Part shown: piece after piece, positions 993 to 61,495 of the stretch
How positions within the stretch are numbered: position 1 is the first letter of the stretch
Layout: the number at the start of each line of letters is the position of its first letter
Origin: Lepidodermella squamata
Taxonomy: Eukaryota > Animalia > Gastrotricha
Assembly (NCBI GenBank): GCA_047495785.1
Contig: JBLDXI010000011.1
Span: forward strand, 1,426,001-1,490,000
Direction of reading: 5' to 3'
Length of the DNA stretch: 64,000 bases
Program-made: the position numbers and the translations under genes
The notes under the pieces: generated by a model
The model's database searches: none
What the model saw: only the letters and a program-made list of their open reading frames with translations
What the model was told of the DNA's origin: nothing

Positions 993-3900
993 TTATCGGC
1001 GTAGCTTTTTTCGTTTCTTCTTATCTTCTAAGTCTTGATCGGGGTCGATAAGTTCTTCACTGCTGCTGCTGCGCCGGCGCGGGAAGCGGCCTCTCTCGAA
1101 TTCGCGGAACAAAGCGGCGACGTAGTCGCGAATTTGAACCAGGTTCAGCCTACCCGGCGCGCCAGGCGGGCCCTGATCGCCCTTTTTGCCCTTTTTGCCG
1201 CGTGAGCCTTAATAAAAAATATAAAAATCGATATTATATTTTCTAGAAAAATAATTTAAACCGCAAATAAAAATTTCAATTTTTAAAAATTATTTTGTTC
1301 AAATCGGAATAGACAAATTTAGATATAATACAAAAATGACTCACCTTTGGGTCCTGGCGGGCCGAAGAAAATTGCCAAGGAAAAACGAAAAATTAGGAAA
1401 TTGCGAAAAATGAAATTTTGAAATCATACCCGGCAAGCCGACTCCTTTAGTGCAGAAAAAAGAGACACCGTATTTAACGACTGGAACATTTTCAGCTTTT
1501 AAATTCTTTACCTCTATCACCTTTGGGACCTTTGGTTTAAAAAAATATATTTTACTTTCCATTTCAGGGTGAAATTTTTGAAAAAATTACCTGGCGCGCC
1601 AACACCTTTGAAAATTGAAAAAAATTTAATTAATAGTTTTAATTTCAATTTTTTCAATTTATTTTACCTCTATCGCCTTTTTCGCCCTTAGTGCCTGGGA
1701 GGAAATACAAACTTGTGAAAAGAGCTTTGAAACGAGGGGCGTAAATTTACCTGGACCTGTGCCGACTATTTAGAAAAAAATTGAAAATTGAACAATCAAT
1801 TTTAAAAAATTGATCCCTTCAGTTTTACTCACCTATTGGGGTACCTAAATAAAAATGGGAGAAACTCATAATAATTAAAATAGTTAAAATTAAAGTTTAC
1901 CTGGCTCTCCTTTCACTCCTATCGACAAGAATTGAAAAATATAATTTTATGACTAGGGGTTTTTGCAGAATCTCTTACCGTCCTTGCCTAAAATAAAAAA
2001 TAAGGGTGAAAATGTGGGAAATTTTTTTTTAAATTTCACCTACCTGCCTCTCCTTTCAGACCTGTAATCGCACGGTTGACGGATAATATCGAATTACAAA
2101 TGTTCATCAATATTTTCAAAACAGACCTCGCTCTCCCTTGGAACCTATAAAAGTCAGTTTTTTTTATTTTTTCTAAAATTCCCAAAAAATTATCAAAGTC
2201 AAACCTTGAATTGAAACTCCGGTGCCTGATCGGGAAAAATAATAAGATTCAGTACTGGAAATTTCGACTGGAAAGTTGAGCTCACCTGGAGTACCCGGCT
2301 CACCCTTAGGACCTGCAACGAGATTAAAAATAATTGAAGTGAAATGGTCTAATTTTCTATCAAACCAGCAGCTCCGACGCCTTGAGAGCCCTGCAAACCT
2401 GAAAAAGTTTCCAAGTTTATTTCAATTTTAGGACAAAATGAAAATTTATCGAACCTCGTTCGCCCTTCGAGCCGATAGGGCCTGTTATGCCGGGTGATCC
2501 GTCCTCTCCCTTGAAGCCTCTAGATCCTTGAGGACCGGGTGATCCCTGGGATCCATGGTCACCTTTAGATCCGGGTAAACCACGAGAGCCCTGAAAACCT
2601 CGTGAGCCTTGAGGACCCCTGCTACCCTGAGCACCATGGCTGCCAAGGCCGCCCCTGCTACCCTGAGGTCCATGAGCACCGGATTCTCCCTTGCTACCCG
2701 GAGCACCGTGATCACCCTTTTCACCCTTGCTACCTGGGGTACCAACTCCCGGAGCACCCTTAGAGCCTTGCGGGCCTTGGGGACCCTGTGAGCCCCTGCT
2801 GCCCTGAGCGCCCTGAGCACCGTGCTCACCCTTGCTACCTGGTAAGCCTTGGCTACCTGGGTTTCCGCGGCTACCATGAGGACCCGGAGTGCCAGCTTCA
2901 CCCTTGCTACCCGGAAGACCTTGAGAGCCTCGACTGCCTTGGAAACCTCGGCTACCCTGAGGGCCATTAGGTCCCTTTGAGCCTTGCGGACCCTGCAGTC
3001 CATCGTGACCCTTGCTGCCTTGAGCACCCATATCTCCCTTGGCACCCTTTTCACCAGAGTCACCGGTTTCACCTTAAAAAGAACGAAAGTAAAAAAAACC
3101 ATGATTACTCGGGATGAGACAACATTACCGTCGAATCCCTGAGGTCCTGGAGAATAAAAATATATATTATGAGCGCGTCAATTTAGTTATTATCAAACCT
3201 CGCGGGCCTACAGGACCCGGTCTTCCCATTTGGCCTTTGTTGCCCTTGTCGCCATTAACACCGGATTGACCTTTGCTGCCCTGGGCTCCTTGGATACCAG
3301 CAGCGCCCTTGCTTCCTTGAGCACCATTGGCGCCAGCTTGGCCCTTGCTACCCAAATCACCATGATCACCCTTTTCACCCTTGCTGCCTTGGATGCTTGC
3401 GCCAGCCTCACCCTTGGAACCTTGGGCGCCGTTGCTACCAGAGGCACCCTTGGAACCTTGGGGACCCGTTGCGCCATCGGTGCCGCTGCTGCCTTGGAGA
3501 CCCCGAGAGCCTTGGACTCCCTGAGAACCCTGAGTACCATGATCGCCCTTTTCACCCTTAGAGCCTTGCGTACCAACACCAGGGTCACCCTTCGAGCCTT
3601 GGGCGCCATTTACACCGGCATCACCTTTGGAACCATGGGGACCTACGCCACCCTCAGCGCCCTTGCTACCTTGTGGCCCAGTTGCGCCATCGCCTCCTCG
3701 ACTTCCCTGGATGCCATGATCGCCTTTTTCTCCCTTGCTGCCTTGGGTGCCCAAGCCCTGTTCACCCTTAGACCCTTGGGCTCCATTTACACCAGCATCA
3801 CCCTTCGAGCCATGTGGACCGGGCATTCCTTCGGCACCCTTACTGCCTTGTGGACCAGTTGCACCGGCTCCTCCAGCACTACCTTGAGCTCCCAGGTCAC

Positions 3901-6900
3901 CTTTCTCACCTTTGCTGCCTTGAGAGCCCTGTCCTGGATGACCTTTCGAGCCTTGAGGACCAGTTGCGCCGGGGTCACCCTTGGAACCCTGCTGACCTGG
4001 GGTTCCGTCTGTGCCTTTGCTGCCTTGGATGCCACGCGAGCCTTGGTCTCCCCGGCTTCCTTGGACACCCTGGTCTCCTTGTTGGCCCTTGGATCCCTGA
4101 GATCCGTCGCCCTTTTCACCCTTTGAGCCTTGGGTACCGTCAACACCGGCGTGACCTTTCGAGCCTTGTGGGCCTGCTCCGCCGTCGTTGCCCCGACTTC
4201 CTTGCGGACCTGTCGCGCCAGCGTCTCCTTTGCTGCCTTGAACACCGTGATCACCAGCTTGACCCTTGCTTCCCTGAGCACCTTGGCCGGGGTCGCCCTT
4301 GGAGCCTGGAGTACCATGGGTACCAGCCTCGCCTTTAGATCCTTGGGTGCCTTGGCTGCCGGCGTCACCCTTGCCGCCTTTCGAACCTTGCGGACCAGCT
4401 CCTCCGGGGGTTCCATCGAGTCCCTTTTCGCCATCGTGTCCCTTCGACCCTAAATAAAGAAATAATGTTAGATAGCTTCAGAAATTTAAAAAGTATCTAT
4501 ATAAACATGAATGAGGCTTGGCATTTGTTTCCAGGCACTGGTTTTCAAAAAGGGAAAGGACCCGGATCACTTGCCAATTCTCAAAGTTCAGAGTCAGAAC
4601 TAACCTTGAGGGCCAGCAGAACCCGTTAGACCTCTGCTTCCCTGTGGGCCGGTTAGACCAGGTTGACCCTTGCTGCCCTGGTTGCCATCGACGCCTGATG
4701 AACCCTTGCTGCCTTGGGGTCCTGCTCCGCCAGTTTCACCTTTGCTGCCCTGAGCGCCTTGATCGCCAGACTGTCCCTTGCTTCCTTGAGCGCCTTGACC
4801 AGGATCACCCTTTGAGCCTTGAGCACCATTCAACCCGGGATCACCCTTCGAACCTTGAGCACCAGGGTTTCCGTTGGTGCCGCTGCTGCCTTGGAGACCC
4901 CGGGAGCCTTGGACTCCCTGAGAACCCTGAGCACCATGGTCACCCTTTTCACCCTTAGAGCCTTGCGTACCAACACCAGCATCACCCTTTGATCCTTGGG
5001 CGCCATTTACACCGGCATCACCTTTGGAACCATGGGGACCTACGCCACCTTCAGCGCCCTTGCTTCCTTGAGGCCCAGTTGCTCCACCGTCTCCCTTGCT
5101 TCCCAGAGAACCTGAGTCACCCTGATGGCCCTTGCTACCCTGAGCGCCCTGTCCTGCATCACCCTTGGAACCTGGATGGCCGATGGGACCTTGATCACCC
5201 TTCGAACCCTGAGCACCATTGAAGCCGTCGGTACCCTTGCTGCCCTGAGGTCCAGTGGCTCCGGAATCTCCCTTGCTGCCTGGAGTGCCGTGATCACCCT
5301 GTTGTCCTTTGCTGCCTTGCAGGCCCTCGTCGCCCTGGTGGCCTTTGCTGCCTTGATCGCCGTGGTCACCCTTGTCACCTTTGCTGCCAGGGCTACCATT
5401 TTCACCTGGAAATATTTGAATAAATCATCAAATAGGCAATTGCAAAAATTATTGAACGAACCTGCAACGCCCTTTGACCCTGAAGTAAAAACAGTCATCA
5501 ATAAAAAACACGGAAATAATATGCAATACAATCAAACCTTGGGAGCCAGCAGGACCGGCAGTTCCCGATTGGCCTTTACTGCCTTGAGCGCCATCGCTAC
5601 CAGATTGACCTTTGCTGCCTTGGGCTCCCTGAAGACCCTCAGAACCTTTGCTTCCTTGAGCACCATTGTCACCAGCGTGGCCTTTGCTACCAGGAGCGCC
5701 CTGATCACCCCTTTCACCTTTGCTGCCTTGGATGCTTGCGCCAGCGTCACCTTTGGAACCTTGGGCGCCGTTGCTACCAGGGTCACCCTTGGAACCTTGA
5801 GGGCCAGGGGATCCGTTGGTACCGCTGCTGCCTTGAAGACCTCGTGAACCTTGGACTCCCTGGCTTCCCGGGGCACCATGATCGCCTTTCTCCCCCTTGC
5901 TGCCTTGGGTTCCAACTCCCGCTACACCCTTGGAGCCTTGCGCACCGTTTGAACCAGCATCGCCTTTTGAACCGTGAGGCCCAGGTGAACCTTCAGCACC
6001 TTTGCTGCCCTGAAGACCACGTGAGCCGTCAGTTCCGCGGCTTCCTTGGGCACCATGATCGCCCTTTTCACCTTTGCTGCCTTGGGTACCAACACCAGGA
6101 TCACCCTTGGAGCCTTGAGCACCGTTGCTGCCAGGATCACCTTTCGAGCCATGTAGACCAGGCAAGCCTTCAGCGCCCTTACTGCCTTGCGGACCTGTGG
6201 CGCCTGCAGCTCCAGCGCTACCTTGAGCTCCCAGATCACCCTTCCCACCTTTGCTGCCCTGTGCACCTTGGCCAAGATCTCCTTTCGAACCCGGAGCGCC
6301 GGTTGCGCCATGCTCACCCTTTGAGCCTTGAGTGCCTTGCAATCCATCGGAACCTTTGCTGCCTTGAGGCCCAGTTGCCCCAGTGCCTCCCTGGGATCCC
6401 TGGACACCCTGGCCTCCTTGCTGGCCTTTTGATCCCTGAGCGCCCTCTCCCTTTTCACCCTTTGAGCCTTGGGTACCGTCAACACCGGCGTGACCCTTCG
6501 AGCCTTGCGGACCTGCTCCGCCGTCATTACCACGGCTTCCCTGCGGACCGGTAGCACCAGCGTCTCCTTTGCTGCCATGGGCTCCTTGATCACCAGATTG
6601 ACCTTTGCTTCCCTGAGCACCTTGGCCAGGATCACCCTTTGAGCCTGGAGTACCATGGGTACCAGCTTCGCCTTTAGATCCTTGGATGCCTTGGCTGCCA
6701 GCGTCACCCTTGCCGCCTTTCGAACCTTGCGGGCCTGCACCTCCCGGTGTCCCATCAAGTCCTTTTTCACCATCGTGTCCTTTCGATCCTATTCAAAAGA
6801 AAAAAGGAAATCAAACACGTTTTTAATTTAAATAATAGCAGATCGAACCTTGAGGGCCAGCAGAACCCATTAAGCCTCTGCTTCCTTGGGGACCAGCTTG

Positions 6901-8014
6901 ACCATGATCACCCTTGCTGCCCTGGACTCCTTCAACGCCGGCAGCACCCTTGCTTCCTTGAGCTCCACTGTCTCCAGCGTGACCCTTGCTACCAATAGCA
7001 CCGAGATCGCCTTTATCGCCCTTGCTTCCTTGAGCACCTTGACCAGGATCACCCTTTGAGCCTGGGGCTCCGTGCAACCCAGGGTCACCCTTGGAACCTT
7101 GAGTGCCAGGGGATCCGTTGGTACCGCTGCTGCCTTGGAGGCCCCTTGAACCTTGAGCGCCCCGAGAACCCTGAGCACCATGGTCACCCTTTTCACCCTT
7201 AGAGCCTTGGGTACCAACACCAGGGTCACCTTTGGAGCCTTGAGCTCCGTTTGAACCAGAAGAACCCTTGGAACCATGGGGACCTACGCCACCCTCAGCG
7301 CCCTTGCTTCCTTGAGGTCCAGTTGCTCCAGTGTCTCCCTTGCCTCCGTTGGCACCTGCGTCACCCTGGTGACCCTTGCTGCCCTGAGCCCCCTGTCCTG
7401 CATCACCCTTGGACCCTGGATGGCCGATAGGACCTTGATCACCCTTCGAACCCTGAGCACCATTGAGCCCATTGCTGCCCTTGCTGCCTTGAGGTCCTGT
7501 GGTTCCGGAATCTCCCTTGCTACCCGGAGCACCTTGATCACCATGTTGTCCCTTGCTGCCTTGAACACCCTGGTCACCCTGGTGACCTTTGCTGCCTTGT
7601 GGGCCAGTAGAGCCATGATCGCCTTTGCTACCTACAGGTCCTACGTCGCCTATGTCAATAATTCAATAAATCAATAATTAGCATTCAGTTCGAGCTATTA
7701 AATTTTACCTTTAGAACCGTGTGGCCCTGTTCAATATAAAATCGGAATTAAATCACAATTAATTTGTAAAATACAAATCTAACCTTGAGAACCAATGGGA
7801 CCAGCTGCGCCTTTCGAACCTAGGAGACCCATCGCACCCTTCAATCCATCATCACCCTTTTCGCCCTTGGATCCTTGAACTGTTTGGCTGTCAGCTAGGC
7901 CGAAAACAGCCAGTAAAACTTTAATAGAAAAATTAAAATTAAAATTAAAATTAAAATAGCATGGAGATATATTTTTTTACCGATTGATAAGAGCAGAAAT
8001 GTGCTCTTAGGCAT
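993..8014 (-). CDS. Large secreted interrupted collagen-like protein (about 1,804 aa, 25 exons) with a repeated QGSKG motif
   Basis: ATG at 8014; signal peptide MPKSTFLLLSIVLLAVFGLADS. Exons: 7981-8014, 7784-7918, 7709-7726, 6849-7649, 5538-6788, 5462-5479, 4605-5405, 3199-4449, 3129-3146, 2455-3072, 14 microexons between 2398 and 1345, and 993-1207. They sum to 5,415 nt in frame and encode Gly-X-Y throughout. The short tail reads RLNLVQIRDYVAALFREFERGRFPRRRSSSSEE...KKKRKKLRR*. Confidence 0.9.
3199..7726 (-). repeat. Internal tandem duplication (about 2.3 kb unit) within the collagen gene
   Basis: The unit [18-nt microexon + 801-nt exon + 1,251-nt exon] occurs twice with identical exon lengths and visibly similar sequence (7726-5538 versus 5479-3199). 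Confidence 0.9.
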
Positions 8015-28543: not shown

Positions 28544-30466
28544 ATGTCAAACGTTGTTGACCTCACGTCTTCAAACTCCGACGATAACTCGGATTCAAAT
28601 TCTACGGTTTCCTACGAAATATCATCTGATGACGATGCTGCAGTTGAACAGAGCCGTAAGCGAAAGGACTCATCACCTGGACCGGATAGTAAGCGATTAA
28701 GCGATGCCAATCGTCCAGTCATCACGCCAACCCAAGGTGACGGTCTTGGCTATCGTTTAACCACTGTGTCTGGAATAAGCAAGTCCTTCAACGACCCAGC
28801 GATGGCTGTCTCCCTGCGATCAGTGCTTGCCGGCTCGCCGAAAATGGGCCCTCTTCTCAGCTCAGTGCAGTTTAATTATCTGTTCGACGTTCATTGGCTA
28901 ATCGAACAATACCCAGCAGAGAGTCAAACATCACCCATATTGATGATCCACGGATTTCGAGGCAACGACGAGGCTAATATGAAAGTCATCGCCTCGCCCT
29001 ACCCCCAAATCACGTTAGCCCAAGCTCGGCTCGAATCTCCCTACGGAACTCATCACACCAAGATGATGTTACTTGAACACGAGCGTGGTTTACGTGTTGT
29101 CATTCATACTGCTAATTTAATCCACGAAGATTGGCACCAGAAAACGCAACTTGTTTGGCAATCACCTTTCCTAACCCGTCGACCCAGCGATCGCACCGCA
29201 TCGCCAGCCCCATCAGCTTTCCACACATCGCTCGCTCAGTATTTAAACGCGTATAACCTACCAGCGTTGAAAGACTGGGCTGAAAAGTTGAAACAGTTCG
29301 ATTTCTCGCCGATCGACGATGACTTGGTCGCGTTTGTCGGGTCGGTGCCTGGCCGCCATGCCGGGCCTCACATCAACGCATTCGGCCACATGCGATTGCG
29401 GGCGCTGCTATCAAAACGGCCGTTCAATCAACCGGCTGATGCGACTCGGGTCATGTGCCAATTTTCTAGCATTGGCTCGTTAGGCGAGTCGGCTGATAAA
29501 TGGCTCATCCCTGAATTGATCGGGTCTTGCCTCGCCGGGTTCTCGACCGGGAATGACGGGGCTGTTTTGAAGGCTGTTGCTAAGCCGAGGCCGATTTTGG
29601 TCTACCCGTCAGTTGCTGATGTTCGAGGGTCGTTGGAAGGCTATGCGGCCGGCGGGTCGCTGCCGTATCGCAAGGATGTGGCGGCTAAGCAGAAGTGGCT
29701 GTCGAGCTATTTGCACTGTTGGCGGGCGAATATGACCGGCCGAACGAGGGCTATGCCGCATGCGAAGACATTTTCGGCGGTTTCGAGCGATTTTGAACGC
29801 ATTTTCTGGCTGCTGATTACATCGGCAAATTTATCGAAAGCTGCCTGGGGTAAACTGGAGAAAAACGATAGCCAGGTAACATTTTTTGAAAATCTCCGAA
29901 ATTCTAAAAAATTCGGAATTTTCGATAATTTTTCAAATAAATTTCAAAAATTCACGAATAATCAAAAAAATGATTTTACAATTTGTTACTAAAATTTGCT
30001 AAATTATTGGATACTTAGCGATATAAAAACGATCGTCAGGTTAATTTTCCAAAAAATCTCAAAAACTTCCGAATTTGCATAATTGATAATTTGAATATTT
30101 TAAAAATTTGTAAAAATTCATAAATAATATAAAAAAATGTAAAAAATTCTAAATTATTGGAATCTCTGCGGATATTATTTTCGGAATTTTGCAAATTTTT
30201 TGAATATTTCAGCCAAATTTTTCAAATTTTTCTGCAATTTTCTTGATTTTACTGATTTTTTCGCTCATATTTTTTAGTTGAATATCTTGTCATATGAAGC
30301 CGGCGTGTTGTTGTTACCGCCTCGTGATTCGCCGAGTTGGAAAGCCGCCGACCTTCTGCTGCCTTTCGACTTGCCGCCGCAGCCTTACGGCCGAGCCGAC
30401 GAGCCGTGGATTGCCGACCAGCCGCAACAGCAGCGCGACACGCACAACCGCTCGTGGCTTGTCTGA
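28544..30466 (+). CDS. TDP1: Tyrosyl-DNA phosphodiesterase 1
   Basis: Exons 28544-29875 and 30278-30466. Catalytic HKN motifs GTHHTKMM...TANL and RAMPHAKT...TSANLSKAAWG; also QFSSIGSLG, SLEGYAAGGSLPY and SYEAGVL. Confidence 0.95.
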
Positions 30467-43854: not shown

Positions 43855-45447
43855 TCAGATTTCTAACAAAGCAAGGATATCGTCCTGTATGGCTCGTATG
43901 CAATTTTCCCCGGAGCAATGTTTCAGGGATTCCAATTCGTTATGCAGATGTCTAGCAAGAACTCGCGGTAAAAATTCACACTTATTCTTCAGCTGGTGCG
44001 GATCCCACGTCAAATCGTAGAACTCGCAATCCGAAGCCGAGAACTCGCAATAGAGCCAATTTCGATGCTTATCAAACACCCTTAAACAATCGTAAGAGTT
44101 ATTCCTAGCGTCCTGGCAGTAGCAAAATTCATCCCCGTCCCATTTCGGCGGAGTCGGGAAAAAATTCGCGGTAACATTCGTGCACAACATGTTGGTCTGG
44201 AAGCAGCCATCGGGCGCTATCACCTTATCCCCATCGCCCAGCTCAAAATCTGCCTCGCCACGGTATTGAACCAACAAAGTGTTCCGAGTTTTACGATGAC
44301 TATCGAAGAATCTCAAAAGTGACTGGCCATCGAATTGCCCCTCGGCTACATCAGCTCTTGCAATCTCGGCAAAAGTTGGCGTTAGGTCGAATAGGGCTAC
44401 CGGAGTGCTCACGAACATTTTCGGCAGGGTGTGAGGGTAAAATGCCCCTGCAGGTAACCACATAACAGGGACTCGAATATCGCAGTCATAGGGCAGGCGT
44501 TTATCCGAAACAGACCGATATTCCCCATTATGATACCCGTTATCCGAGGCGTAGAACAAATGCGTTGAATCTAGCAATTCAAGCTCCTGCAAACGGTCGA
44601 CAACATTCAGCACTATATCGTCAACAGTTTTCAAGCTCTGCAGGCGTTTTCGATACTCGACATCGGTGAAATGAATCAAATTCTCATCCATTTCCTCCGC
44701 CCGGCTAACCAGCCATTGCTTACCCTCTTGCCCGTGGTTGAAAGATGGCGGTCGAGGCGATTTGATCCCCTCGAAATCGTTTTGGTACTGCGGCTCAGCG
44801 TCGTTAGGTAGATGGCATGCTGTTACTGCTAGGATCATCATAAAAGGCCTGTCGCTTTGTTTACGACCTTCAAGGAAGTTGAGCGCGTGATTCTCGACAA
44901 CCCTTGGCAAATAATCGTCCGGGTAAGTTGTGCCATGGTCTTTCCTAACTCCGTTGTTCGAAATGCTGTAGTCGTACTGAACACTCGACCCAGTTCCGTG
45001 CCAATCAGTCCAGCCTGCTGGGATCCGTTCATAGCCACCATTTTGGTTTGACCCGTAGTTGTTAAGGTACTTCCCAGCGTAGAATGTGTCATACCCAGCG
45101 GCTTGCATTACTACAGGTAGAGAAAACGGCTCGTTACGTTTTTGCCAGTTGACTGAATCGCAATCGCCTAGTAATGAGTTGTTCACGGCTCCGTTCCTGC
45201 CGATGTGACGGCCGGATATGAATGTAGCCCGGCTGACGCAGCATACAGGGGTGGTTGTGTACGTGTTTTCGAAGTGGATTGGGCTTTTGTTGAAGAGACG
45301 CCGAATGCCGGGGACGAACTCGAGTGTCGACATGTCCTGGTCGTCTGTGAGGAACATGACGATATTAGGCCGCTTATTCTGATCGCCATCAGACTTAACA
45401 AAGGCCATCATACAGGCCGAAAGTAGAAAAATCAGTTGTAAATTCAT
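43855..45447 (-). CDS. N-acetylglucosamine-6-sulfatase (GNS/Sulf family)-like sulfatase, intronless, with signal peptide
   Basis: RPNIVMFLTDDQD, CCVSRATFISG, GYDTFYAGKYLN, SDNGYH, DKRLPYDCDIRVP, DARNNSYDCLR and YDLTWDPHQL. TATA-like ATATAAA about 45 nt upstream of the ATG. Confidence 0.9.
   Translation of the reverse strand: MNLQLIFLLSACMMAFVKSDGDQNKRPNIVMFLTDDQDMSTLEFVPGIRRLFNKSPIHFENTYTTTPVCCVSRATFISGRHIGRNGAVNNSLLGDCDSVNWQKRNEPFSLPVVMQAAGYDTFYAGKYLNNYGSNQNGGYERIPAGWTDWHGTGSSVQYDYSISNNGVRKDHGTTYPDDYLPRVVENHALNFLEGRKQSDRPFMMILAVTACHLPNDAEPQYQNDFEGIKSPRPPSFNHGQEGKQWLVSRAEEMDENLIHFTDVEYRKRLQSLKTVDDIVLNVVDRLQELELLDSTHLFYASDNGYHNGEYRSVSDKRLPYDCDIRVPVMWLPAGAFYPHTLPKMFVSTPVALFDLTPTFAEIARADVAEGQFDGQSLLRFFDSHRKTRNTLLVQYRGEADFELGDGDKVIAPDGCFQTNMLCTNVTANFFPTPPKWDGDEFCYCQDARNNSYDCLRVFDKHRNWLYCEFSASDCEFYDLTWDPHQLKNKCEFLPRVLARHLHNELESLKHCSGENCIRAIQDDILALLEI

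Positions 45448-59760: not shown

Positions 59761-61495
<1,735 letters not shown>

Follow-up and report, generated by a model that had tools for sequence, protein, structure and literature searches.

Here, we analyse a 64,000-nt stretch of genomic DNA from the gastrotrich Lepidodermella squamata (assembly GCA_047495785.1, contig JBLDXI010000011.1, positions 1,426,001 to 1,490,000 of the forward strand; hereafter the window), in which the minus strand of positions 993-8014 carries, as judged from a predicted splice model, an intact animal collagen gene. A first-pass annotation had placed a Cys-free collagen of about 1,800 amino acids (aa) here, and the model agrees with it, giving 1,804 aa and no Cys within the same limits. 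Between approximately 2,000 and 8,000 the window is G+C-rich and C-skewed with a Gly-X-Y frame on the minus strand, and short AT-rich spacers, whose junctions can be read in the sequence, cut this collagen frame into blocks. Pfam, PDB, word and profile searches were run exon by exon, and the joined model was used for local counts. The gene is made up of the following parts.

993-8014, minus strand: whole collagen gene, 25 exons, coding sequence of 5,415 nt, 1,804 aa, internal stops 0
7981-8014, minus strand: exon 1, holding the ATG together with the opening 11 codons of the signal peptide
7784-7918, minus strand: exon 2, with the remainder of the signal peptide, DSQTVQ and the initial Gly-X-Y triplets; Pfam Collagen E 9e-6
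5538-7726, minus strand: repeat block 1, exons 3-5 (18 + 801 + 1,251 nt), 690 aa
3199-5479, minus strand: repeat block 2, exons 6-8 (18 + 801 + 1,251 nt), 690 aa
2455-3146, minus strand: exons 9-10 (18 + 618 nt), a divergent GSR/GSK-rich collagen part with 9.9% Pro
1345-2398, minus strand: 14 micro-exons (9-33 nt each), which encode 85 collagen residues interrupted by several short breaks
1152-1207, minus strand: last exon, collagen end, with the basic triplets GSR GKK GKK GDQ and a GPPGAPG cap
1092-1151, minus strand: amphipathic heptad helix directly behind the last Gly-X-Y, with L, I, V, L and F at the a/d positions
1071-1088, minus strand: RFPRRR, a candidate proprotein-convertase site (R-x-x-R plus a tribasic run)
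996-1070, minus strand: tail with SSSSEE, an acidic stretch and KKKRKKLRR; stop codon at 993-995

The model starts at an ATG at 8014-8012, with a TGA in frame 15 nt 5' of it, and ends at a TAA at 995-993. All 24 introns (52-155 nt) are GT-AG and all 24 are phase 1, splitting a Gly codon. Exons 1-10 measure 34, 135, 18, 801, 1,251, 18, 801, 1,251, 18 and 618 nt, and are followed by the 14 micro-exons and a last exon of 215 nt. Acceptor AG and donor GT dinucleotides flank every micro-exon; exon 19 can be read as 15 nt (1751-1765, the version in the model) or alternatively as 6 nt (1751-1756). Nine of the 24 introns, at the donors of exons 2, 4-8, 10, 11 and 13, start with GTT (GTTCGAT/GTTTGAT type) and not with the usual GTA or GTG, and when read in frame these starts mimic the Gly-Ser codons of the GSK motif. 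In a crude survey of the paralog collagen loci, which includes false positives, GTT donors make up approximately 20%.

Downstream of the collagen gene lies a convergent plus-strand gene, which covers positions 1-648 and extends upstream of the window (L029:987-2233). This small gene encodes a secreted product; it has a signal peptide, a repeat rich in Ser, Gly and Tyr (GYSGYSGY type), short collagen-like exons with GPPGPPGPP and a tail rich in Thr and Pro, and its stop is approximately 345 nt from that of the collagen gene. Because this gene ends near position 648, there is no space for extra 3' collagen exons, and the genomic sequence offers no 3' room for splicing on to a canonical non-collagenous (NC) domain.

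Composition and class of the predicted protein

The predicted protein consists, in order, of a signal peptide, six further residues, a 1,726-residue Gly-X-Y domain and a short non-collagen tail. Read by eye, the N-terminus has four residues (one of them Lys) and a hydrophobic core of approximately 16 residues followed by G-L-A; cleavage is predicted after ...FGLA, and the collagen begins six residues (DSQTVQ) later. The collagen domain holds 553 clean triplets and 25 interruptions. Besides Cys, Trp is absent from the protein; Tyr occurs once and His 45 times. GPP is found once, GSK 106 times, GSR 24 times and KG[DE] 85 times, in keeping with the first-pass annotation, which had noted scarce GPP together with frequent KGE/KGD pairs and His. 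Pro makes up 6.0% of the whole protein and 9.3% of the non-Gly positions of the helix. Lys and Gln fill the Y position equally often (141 each) and there are 98 QGS[KR] motifs. The Y-position Lys highlighted earlier stands in a fixed QGSKG context. The mature chain is computed to have a mass of approximately 164 kDa and an isoelectric point of approximately 9.6, and to form a rod of approximately 494 nm.

Pfam reports PF01391 on the five large exons at E values of 1e-36 to 1e-60 and no other family, and the protein, which passes the PF01391 cut-off, is a member of the collagen superfamily. COLFI, C4 and C1q domains are found in no exon, as the first-pass annotation had also stated. The protein is not of the fibrillar class, given that it has no COLFI (PF01410) C-propeptide and that its helix is broken 25 times, compared with an uninterrupted stretch of approximately 1,000 residues in that class. 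Type IV and network collagens are likewise excluded by the lack of a C4 match on any exon and by the lack of Cys, which leaves no 7S Cys region. A nematode-type cuticle collagen is not indicated either, with Cys 0 in 1,804 aa and PF01391 as the sole family (no Col_cuticle_N), nor is collagen XXVIII, with no VWA on any exon and an N-terminal non-collagen part of six residues. Membrane-associated collagens with interrupted triple helices (MACITs), which are marked by a cytoplasmic N-terminal domain, a signal-anchor transmembrane helix and a juxtamembrane coiled coil, differ in that the present protein has, by eye, four residues before a hydrophobic core with a small-residue cleavage motif.

Repeat periods, KG[DE] pairs and the internal duplication

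The first-pass annotation had described a 9-residue period with GSK in roughly every third triplet, and on this point it has to be corrected. Spacings of 12 residues between GS[KR] motifs occur 75 times, of 11 residues 19 times (across a break) and of 9 residues 3 times, and the 12-mer GS[KR]-Gxx-Gxx-Gx[Q/P/H] followed by GS[KR] is found 76 times versus twice for the 9-mer version. The maximum number of 12-residue spacings in 2,000 triplet shuffles was 26. Spacing counts and shuffles thus rule out the 9-residue period; GSK recurs in every fourth triplet, that is, every 12 residues or approximately 3.4 nm.

A second, longer period is superimposed on the first. The autocorrelation of the non-Gly positions has its maxima at lags of 59, 12 and 118, and Tandem Repeats Finder, which is independent of the residue counts, returns periods of 177 nt and 36 nt. 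The 59-residue super-repeat corresponds to five 12-residue sub-units minus one residue (5 x 12 - 1), and each unit has a single one-residue Gly-X-Gly break, approximately 16.9 nm from the next. The consensus around the break is GSKGDP-G[Q/V]G-[A/T]Q-GSKGEKGDH, with GASIQ instead in two units, so the short interruptions of the GQG, GVG and GASIQ kind reported before are indeed present. Twelve units (eleven of 59 residues and one of 60) nearly fill each 690-residue block, and in both blocks the breaks are 59 residues apart save for one gap of 119 residues per block, at a unit without a break. The first-pass annotation had not described this super-repeat, nor the exon layout, the duplication inside the gene or the family of paralogs.

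Collagens IV and XXVIII resemble the gene in having many short Gly-X-Gly and four-residue breaks beside charged triplets, and charge-flanked short breaks are expected to lend flexibility (PMC11923368). The title of Veit et al. 2006, as cited in PMC13138384, describes collagen XXVIII as having many imperfections. Unlike these collagens, the present protein lacks VWA and C4/NC1 domains as well as the 7S Cys, and its breaks come every 59 residues, a strict periodicity that arises because the breaks belong to the amplified repeat unit.

KGE and KGD together account for 15.2% of Yaa-Gly-Xaa triplets, the 85 KG[DE] comparing with 26.6 expected under independent X and Y (3.2x), and a KG[DE] lies no more than two triplets away from each of the 22 short breaks examined. 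Malcor et al. 2025 describe KGE and KGD as kinetic clamps that are enriched beside interruptions, with an abundance that is usually 3-6% and reaches 13% for KGD in viruses (PMC11923368). Low imino acid content combined with very high KGD/KGE is shared with bacterial and viral collagen-like proteins such as streptococcal Scl2, and with such a composition stability would come from electrostatic clamps. In exon-wise word searches only generic matches were obtained (phage tail fibres, bacterial proteins, MARCO and C1q/TNF proteins), at 50% identity or less, those to bacterial and viral collagen-like proteins reaching 36-50%. Unlike Scl2-type proteins, the gene is intron-rich, encodes a signal peptide and has no globular V or tail-fibre domain, and, unlike the bacterial and viral proteins, it resides in a genome with prolyl and lysyl hydroxylase-type genes. 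The likeness is compositional and is not evidence of descent.

Repeat blocks 1 and 2 are 80-82% identical in nucleotide sequence; their exon lengths agree exactly, the break types come in the same order, and the introns have diverged past alignment. Between exon 5 and exon 8 the Nei-Gojobori estimates of synonymous (dS) and non-synonymous (dN) divergence are 0.80 and 0.11 (dN/dS 0.14), and GS[KR] is conserved between the copies at 29 of 31 sites compared with 68% identity at the other non-Gly positions. The level of identity, dS, dN/dS and the exact exon lengths show that this three-exon, 690-residue block was duplicated long ago and that purifying selection acts on each half. The published L. 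squamata assembly was made from multiple-displacement-amplified DNA, and amplification chimeras have been warned of (PMC11660948), so an artefact was worth excluding. An assembly artefact as the source of the duplication is ruled out by the approximately 80% identity and the dS, and selection together with the conserved register and length argues against both a pseudogene and an amplification artefact.

The C-terminal module and the paralog family

The share of Pro rises towards the C-terminal end, from 5% in the repeat blocks through 9.9% (exons 9-10) and 11.8% (micro-exons) to 15.8% in the final collagen triplets, and the GPPGAPG cap region is the most Pro-rich part of the helix. Behind the cap, a 19-residue stretch has hydrophobic heptad a/d positions that are conserved in alignments of the paralogs, and AlphaFold2 (monomer, five-row alignment) places a helix at residues 23-39 of the last exon with a predicted local distance difference test score of 80-87, the remainder being of low confidence. 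The C-terminal helix, RRRSSSSEE and basic tail named in the first-pass annotation are thus all present in the last exon, and the heptad pattern and its conservation fit the proposal that the helix could act as a minimal trimerisation element. As leads only, RFPRRR fits a minimal convertase site and SSSSEE fits the S-x-E motif of secretory kinases. An RRR run is found in paralog L002 as well, in a different alignment column, and in L005 only 3' of an in-frame stop.

No specific match to the C-terminus was obtained in Pfam (E up to 10; weak Collagen only), PDB sequences or the ESM Atlas, and profile, PDB and Pfam searches assign it to no known collagen class. Against 1.84 billion representatives, the profile of the C-terminal module gave a top match of 57.7 bits. 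The matches are a mixture of bacterial or phage proteins in which collagen-helix units repeat, one CCBE1-like fragment, one C1q protein resembling adipolin, and unnamed exon open reading frames of eukaryotic origin. With top matches this heterogeneous (≤57.7 bits), a family outside the L. squamata genome that shares the module cannot be claimed. CCBE1, adipolin/CTRP12 and the collectin neck have the same layout, in which the collagen end is followed by an amphipathic helix with an I-R/K-D-[IY] core, and the CCBE1-like P0167 and adipolin-like P0137 match the family profile at 37-42 bits, weakly and partly through Gly-X-Y. CCBE1/adipolin-type proteins, unlike the present one, have EGF or C1q domains and short helices, and the likeness is one of layout. 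The arrangement of a GPPGPPG cap and a short amphipathic helix recurs among collagen-like proteins, with no homologous family that could be named. The helix core of paralog L026 (C34:325844-325966), K-D-I-C-S-E-L, closely resembles the D-I-R-D-I-C motif of unnamed eukaryotic contigs, which sits after collagen triplets in Logan contigs from public sequencing runs (P0129, P0138 and P0164), and the helix module may exist in other animals.

Within the L. squamata genome (121.2 Mb in 151 contigs), a six-frame search with one exon gave more than 150 collagen matches across many contigs. With the profile of the C-terminal module, the present gene scores 81 bits, and a further seven loci score 24-86 bits. 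By these scores the gene belongs to a genome-expanded family of at least eight genes with a common C-terminal module, and it has all of the family's features, namely the basic triplets, the GPPGPPG-type cap, the heptad helix and a Pro-poor, Cys-free, GSK-rich triple helix. Paralogs on contigs C31, C34 and C48 are similarly GSK-rich and Cys-free, Pro making up 1-3% of the stretches examined. At the loci with a recognised gene end (C31, C34 and C10), the same basic triplets, GPPGPPG cap and heptad helix are found, and two C31 paralogs have candidate small 3' exons like those of the present gene. The periods differ, being 9 (GSKGAQGSQ), 21 and 144 residues in paralogs versus 12/59 here. No other locus in the genome has the 59-residue break pattern, and the best non-self matches are at most 56% identical and have other periods; the strictly periodic one-residue break is thus, on sequence comparison, confined to this gene among the paralogs compared.

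Giant annelid and nematode cuticle collagens are also lineage-expanded and lack COLFI, and the annelid ones are very long rods. The present gene is like both in being a lineage-expanded invertebrate structural collagen without COLFI (for the annelid proteins by description), whereas the nematode proteins are short and recognised by their Cys clusters, which it lacks. Given that the gene belongs to a genome-expanded collagen family, it represents an unusual variant of a known protein type. Hence, the lineage-specific collagen of the first-pass annotation stands in so far as the gene is lineage-expanded, of secreted type and devoid of a canonical NC domain, but it is not a one-off. Apart from the period, the features observed there are real, and the interpretation placed on them is reasonable and partly supported.

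Two side observations concern the assembly and the neighbourhood of the gene. C31:1-10400 and C48:648200-656000 have collagen matches with pairwise-identical scores in mirrored order, which suggests that one and the same region entered the assembly two times, through a haplotig or overlapping contig ends. Elsewhere in the window, long single open reading frames encode a tyrosyl-DNA phosphodiesterase (28544-29992, plus strand, E 3.5e-106), a sulfatase and a tubulin-tyrosine-ligase-like protein (43855-45447 and 59761-61456, both minus strand), all of them ordinary genes of an animal that have few introns, or none, there.

Proposed assembly of the collagen and alternative readings

On balance we favour, with moderate confidence, a secreted, probably homotrimeric, non-fibrillar structural collagen of approximately 0.49 micrometre that is nucleated at its C-terminal end, clamped and regularly hinged. 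The chains would join at the C-terminus through the GPP-type cap and the 19-residue heptad helix, and folding would then zip N-terminally. The C-terminal end is the likely site of trimerisation and registration because only there are imino-rich triplets and a conserved heptad helix found; C-terminal nucleation followed by zipping towards the N-terminus is how collagens are described in PMC11923368. The helix, with approximately 9% imino acids, would be held by interchain salt bridges of the type Lys(Y)-Gly-Asp/Glu(X), and a clamp-flanked Gly-X-Gly break every 59 residues (approximately 17 nm) would make it a regularly hinged and not a stiff rod. QGSKG every 12 residues would display the Y-position Lys, which is probably modified: it could be hydroxylated by lysyl hydroxylase and glycosylated with Gal/Glc or, alternatively, be cross-linked by transglutaminase to Gln, which fills the Y position just as often. 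A convertase may remove the acidic and basic tail that comes after RFPRRR. A homotrimer is the simplest reading because no paralog has breaks that match those of the gene.

Several points weigh against this picture. Word-index searches with exons 5 and 10 returned no near-identical or transcript-derived protein, and both the signal-peptide and the convertase cleavage were assigned by eye. The helix was modelled as a monomer, and 19 residues are short for a coiled coil. The regular breaks could be a frozen trait of the amplified unit without a role as hinges. Finally, the control genomes were silent in the six-frame searches of the genome, which detected neither lysyl oxidase (PF01186) nor COLFI (PF01410) despite dozens of collagen loci.

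Among the modifying enzymes encoded in the genome, the PLOD type has two strong tandem loci, GT25 and the transglutaminase core have four loci each, and there are P4H alpha N-domain loci as well. The tandem PLOD-type glycosyltransferase domains at C12:360066-365633 score 280 and 187 bits, and one of them lies inside an open frame of 729 aa, pointing to a duplication of lysyl hydroxylase genes that have few introns or none. Host-guest data indicate that GSK is not intrinsically stabilising, so the Ser-Lys of QGSKG is not explained by helix propensity, and its invariance therefore points to recognition by an enzyme. With these enzymes encoded, glycosylation of hydroxylysine (Hyl) and Gln-Lys isopeptide cross-linking would both be chemically available, and neither is preferred.

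If the first of these chemistries dominates, the protein would be a glycosylated, hydrated coat collagen in which the Y-position Lys is hydroxylated and carries Gal-Glc, as in collagen IV, adiponectin and collectins, giving a flexible, sugar-decorated rod and not a cross-linked fibre. We regard this as a possible reading, clearly behind the one preferred above. Known sites of Hyl glycosylation lie in the context X-Lys-Gly with Asp/Glu behind it; the PLOD-type and GT25 loci supply the enzymes, and the Ser-Lys invariance between the repeat blocks, present although GSK does not itself stabilise the helix, is in line with it. However, the modification of Lys is a prediction from sequence context.

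A covalent transglutaminase network, in which the paired Y-position Gln and Lys of each QGSKG would link rods by inter-helix isopeptide bonds, with the rods offset by multiples of 12 or 59 residues, and so replace the lysyl-oxidase and disulfide chemistry of other collagens, appears doubtful. The equal numbers of Gln and Lys at Y, the 98 QGS[KR] motifs, the lack of Cys, the single Tyr, the undetected lysyl oxidase and the four transglutaminase-core loci all accord with such a network. On the other hand, Gln at Y is also simply helix-favourable in host-guest data, and 85 of the 141 Y-position Lys are already positioned for KG[DE] salt bridges. The transglutaminase loci, moreover, were identified by their core domain, and the controls of the lysyl oxidase search were silent. 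A bolder and rather improbable extension is that the 12-residue Lys/Gln motif and the 59-residue hinge form an assembly code, by which homotrimeric rods would stack in registers of approximately 17 nm and be locked by isopeptide bonds or sugars into a para-crystalline cuticle or scale material. If true, such a material would do without NC domains, cysteine, tyrosine and lysyl oxidase, and its collagen would be assembled in a way that is not known from any animal.

We consider it quite unlikely that the protein is a membrane-anchored, type II MACIT-like collagen or one chain of a heterotrimer with a paralog. The N-terminal hydrophobic stretch could in principle be a signal anchor, but four residues, a core of approximately 16 residues and G-L-A are, by eye, typical of a cleaved signal peptide. 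Many paralogs have the same C-terminal module, yet none matches the gene in break positions or length, so a mixed helix would misalign the interruptions. Least probable of all is an unexpressed or decaying copy, or a duplication created by assembly or amplification: although no transcript-derived protein was retrieved and amplification chimeras have been warned of (PMC11660948), the frame is open over 25 exons with 24 canonical introns, and the divergence of the two blocks (80-82% identity, dS 0.80, dN/dS 0.14), with exact exon lengths and unalignable introns, speaks for two old and selected copies.

The secreted, C-terminally nucleated and clamped collagen that we favour would offer a naturally occurring case, in an animal, of a long triple helix having to fold and stay folded with approximately 9% imino acids. 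Because its proposed clamps adjoin the breaks, it provides an extreme test case for the electrostatic 'folding code' lately put forward for collagens (PMC11923368). The periodic one-residue breaks and the 3.4-nm Lys spacing lead to predictions that can be checked by electron microscopy and mass spectrometry, and the design, which is Cys-free and has minimal end domains with a short helix as candidate trimeriser, may interest engineers of recombinant collagens. Together with its paralogs, the gene shows how large and diverse a collagen repertoire a little-studied phylum has built through the amplification of repeat units.

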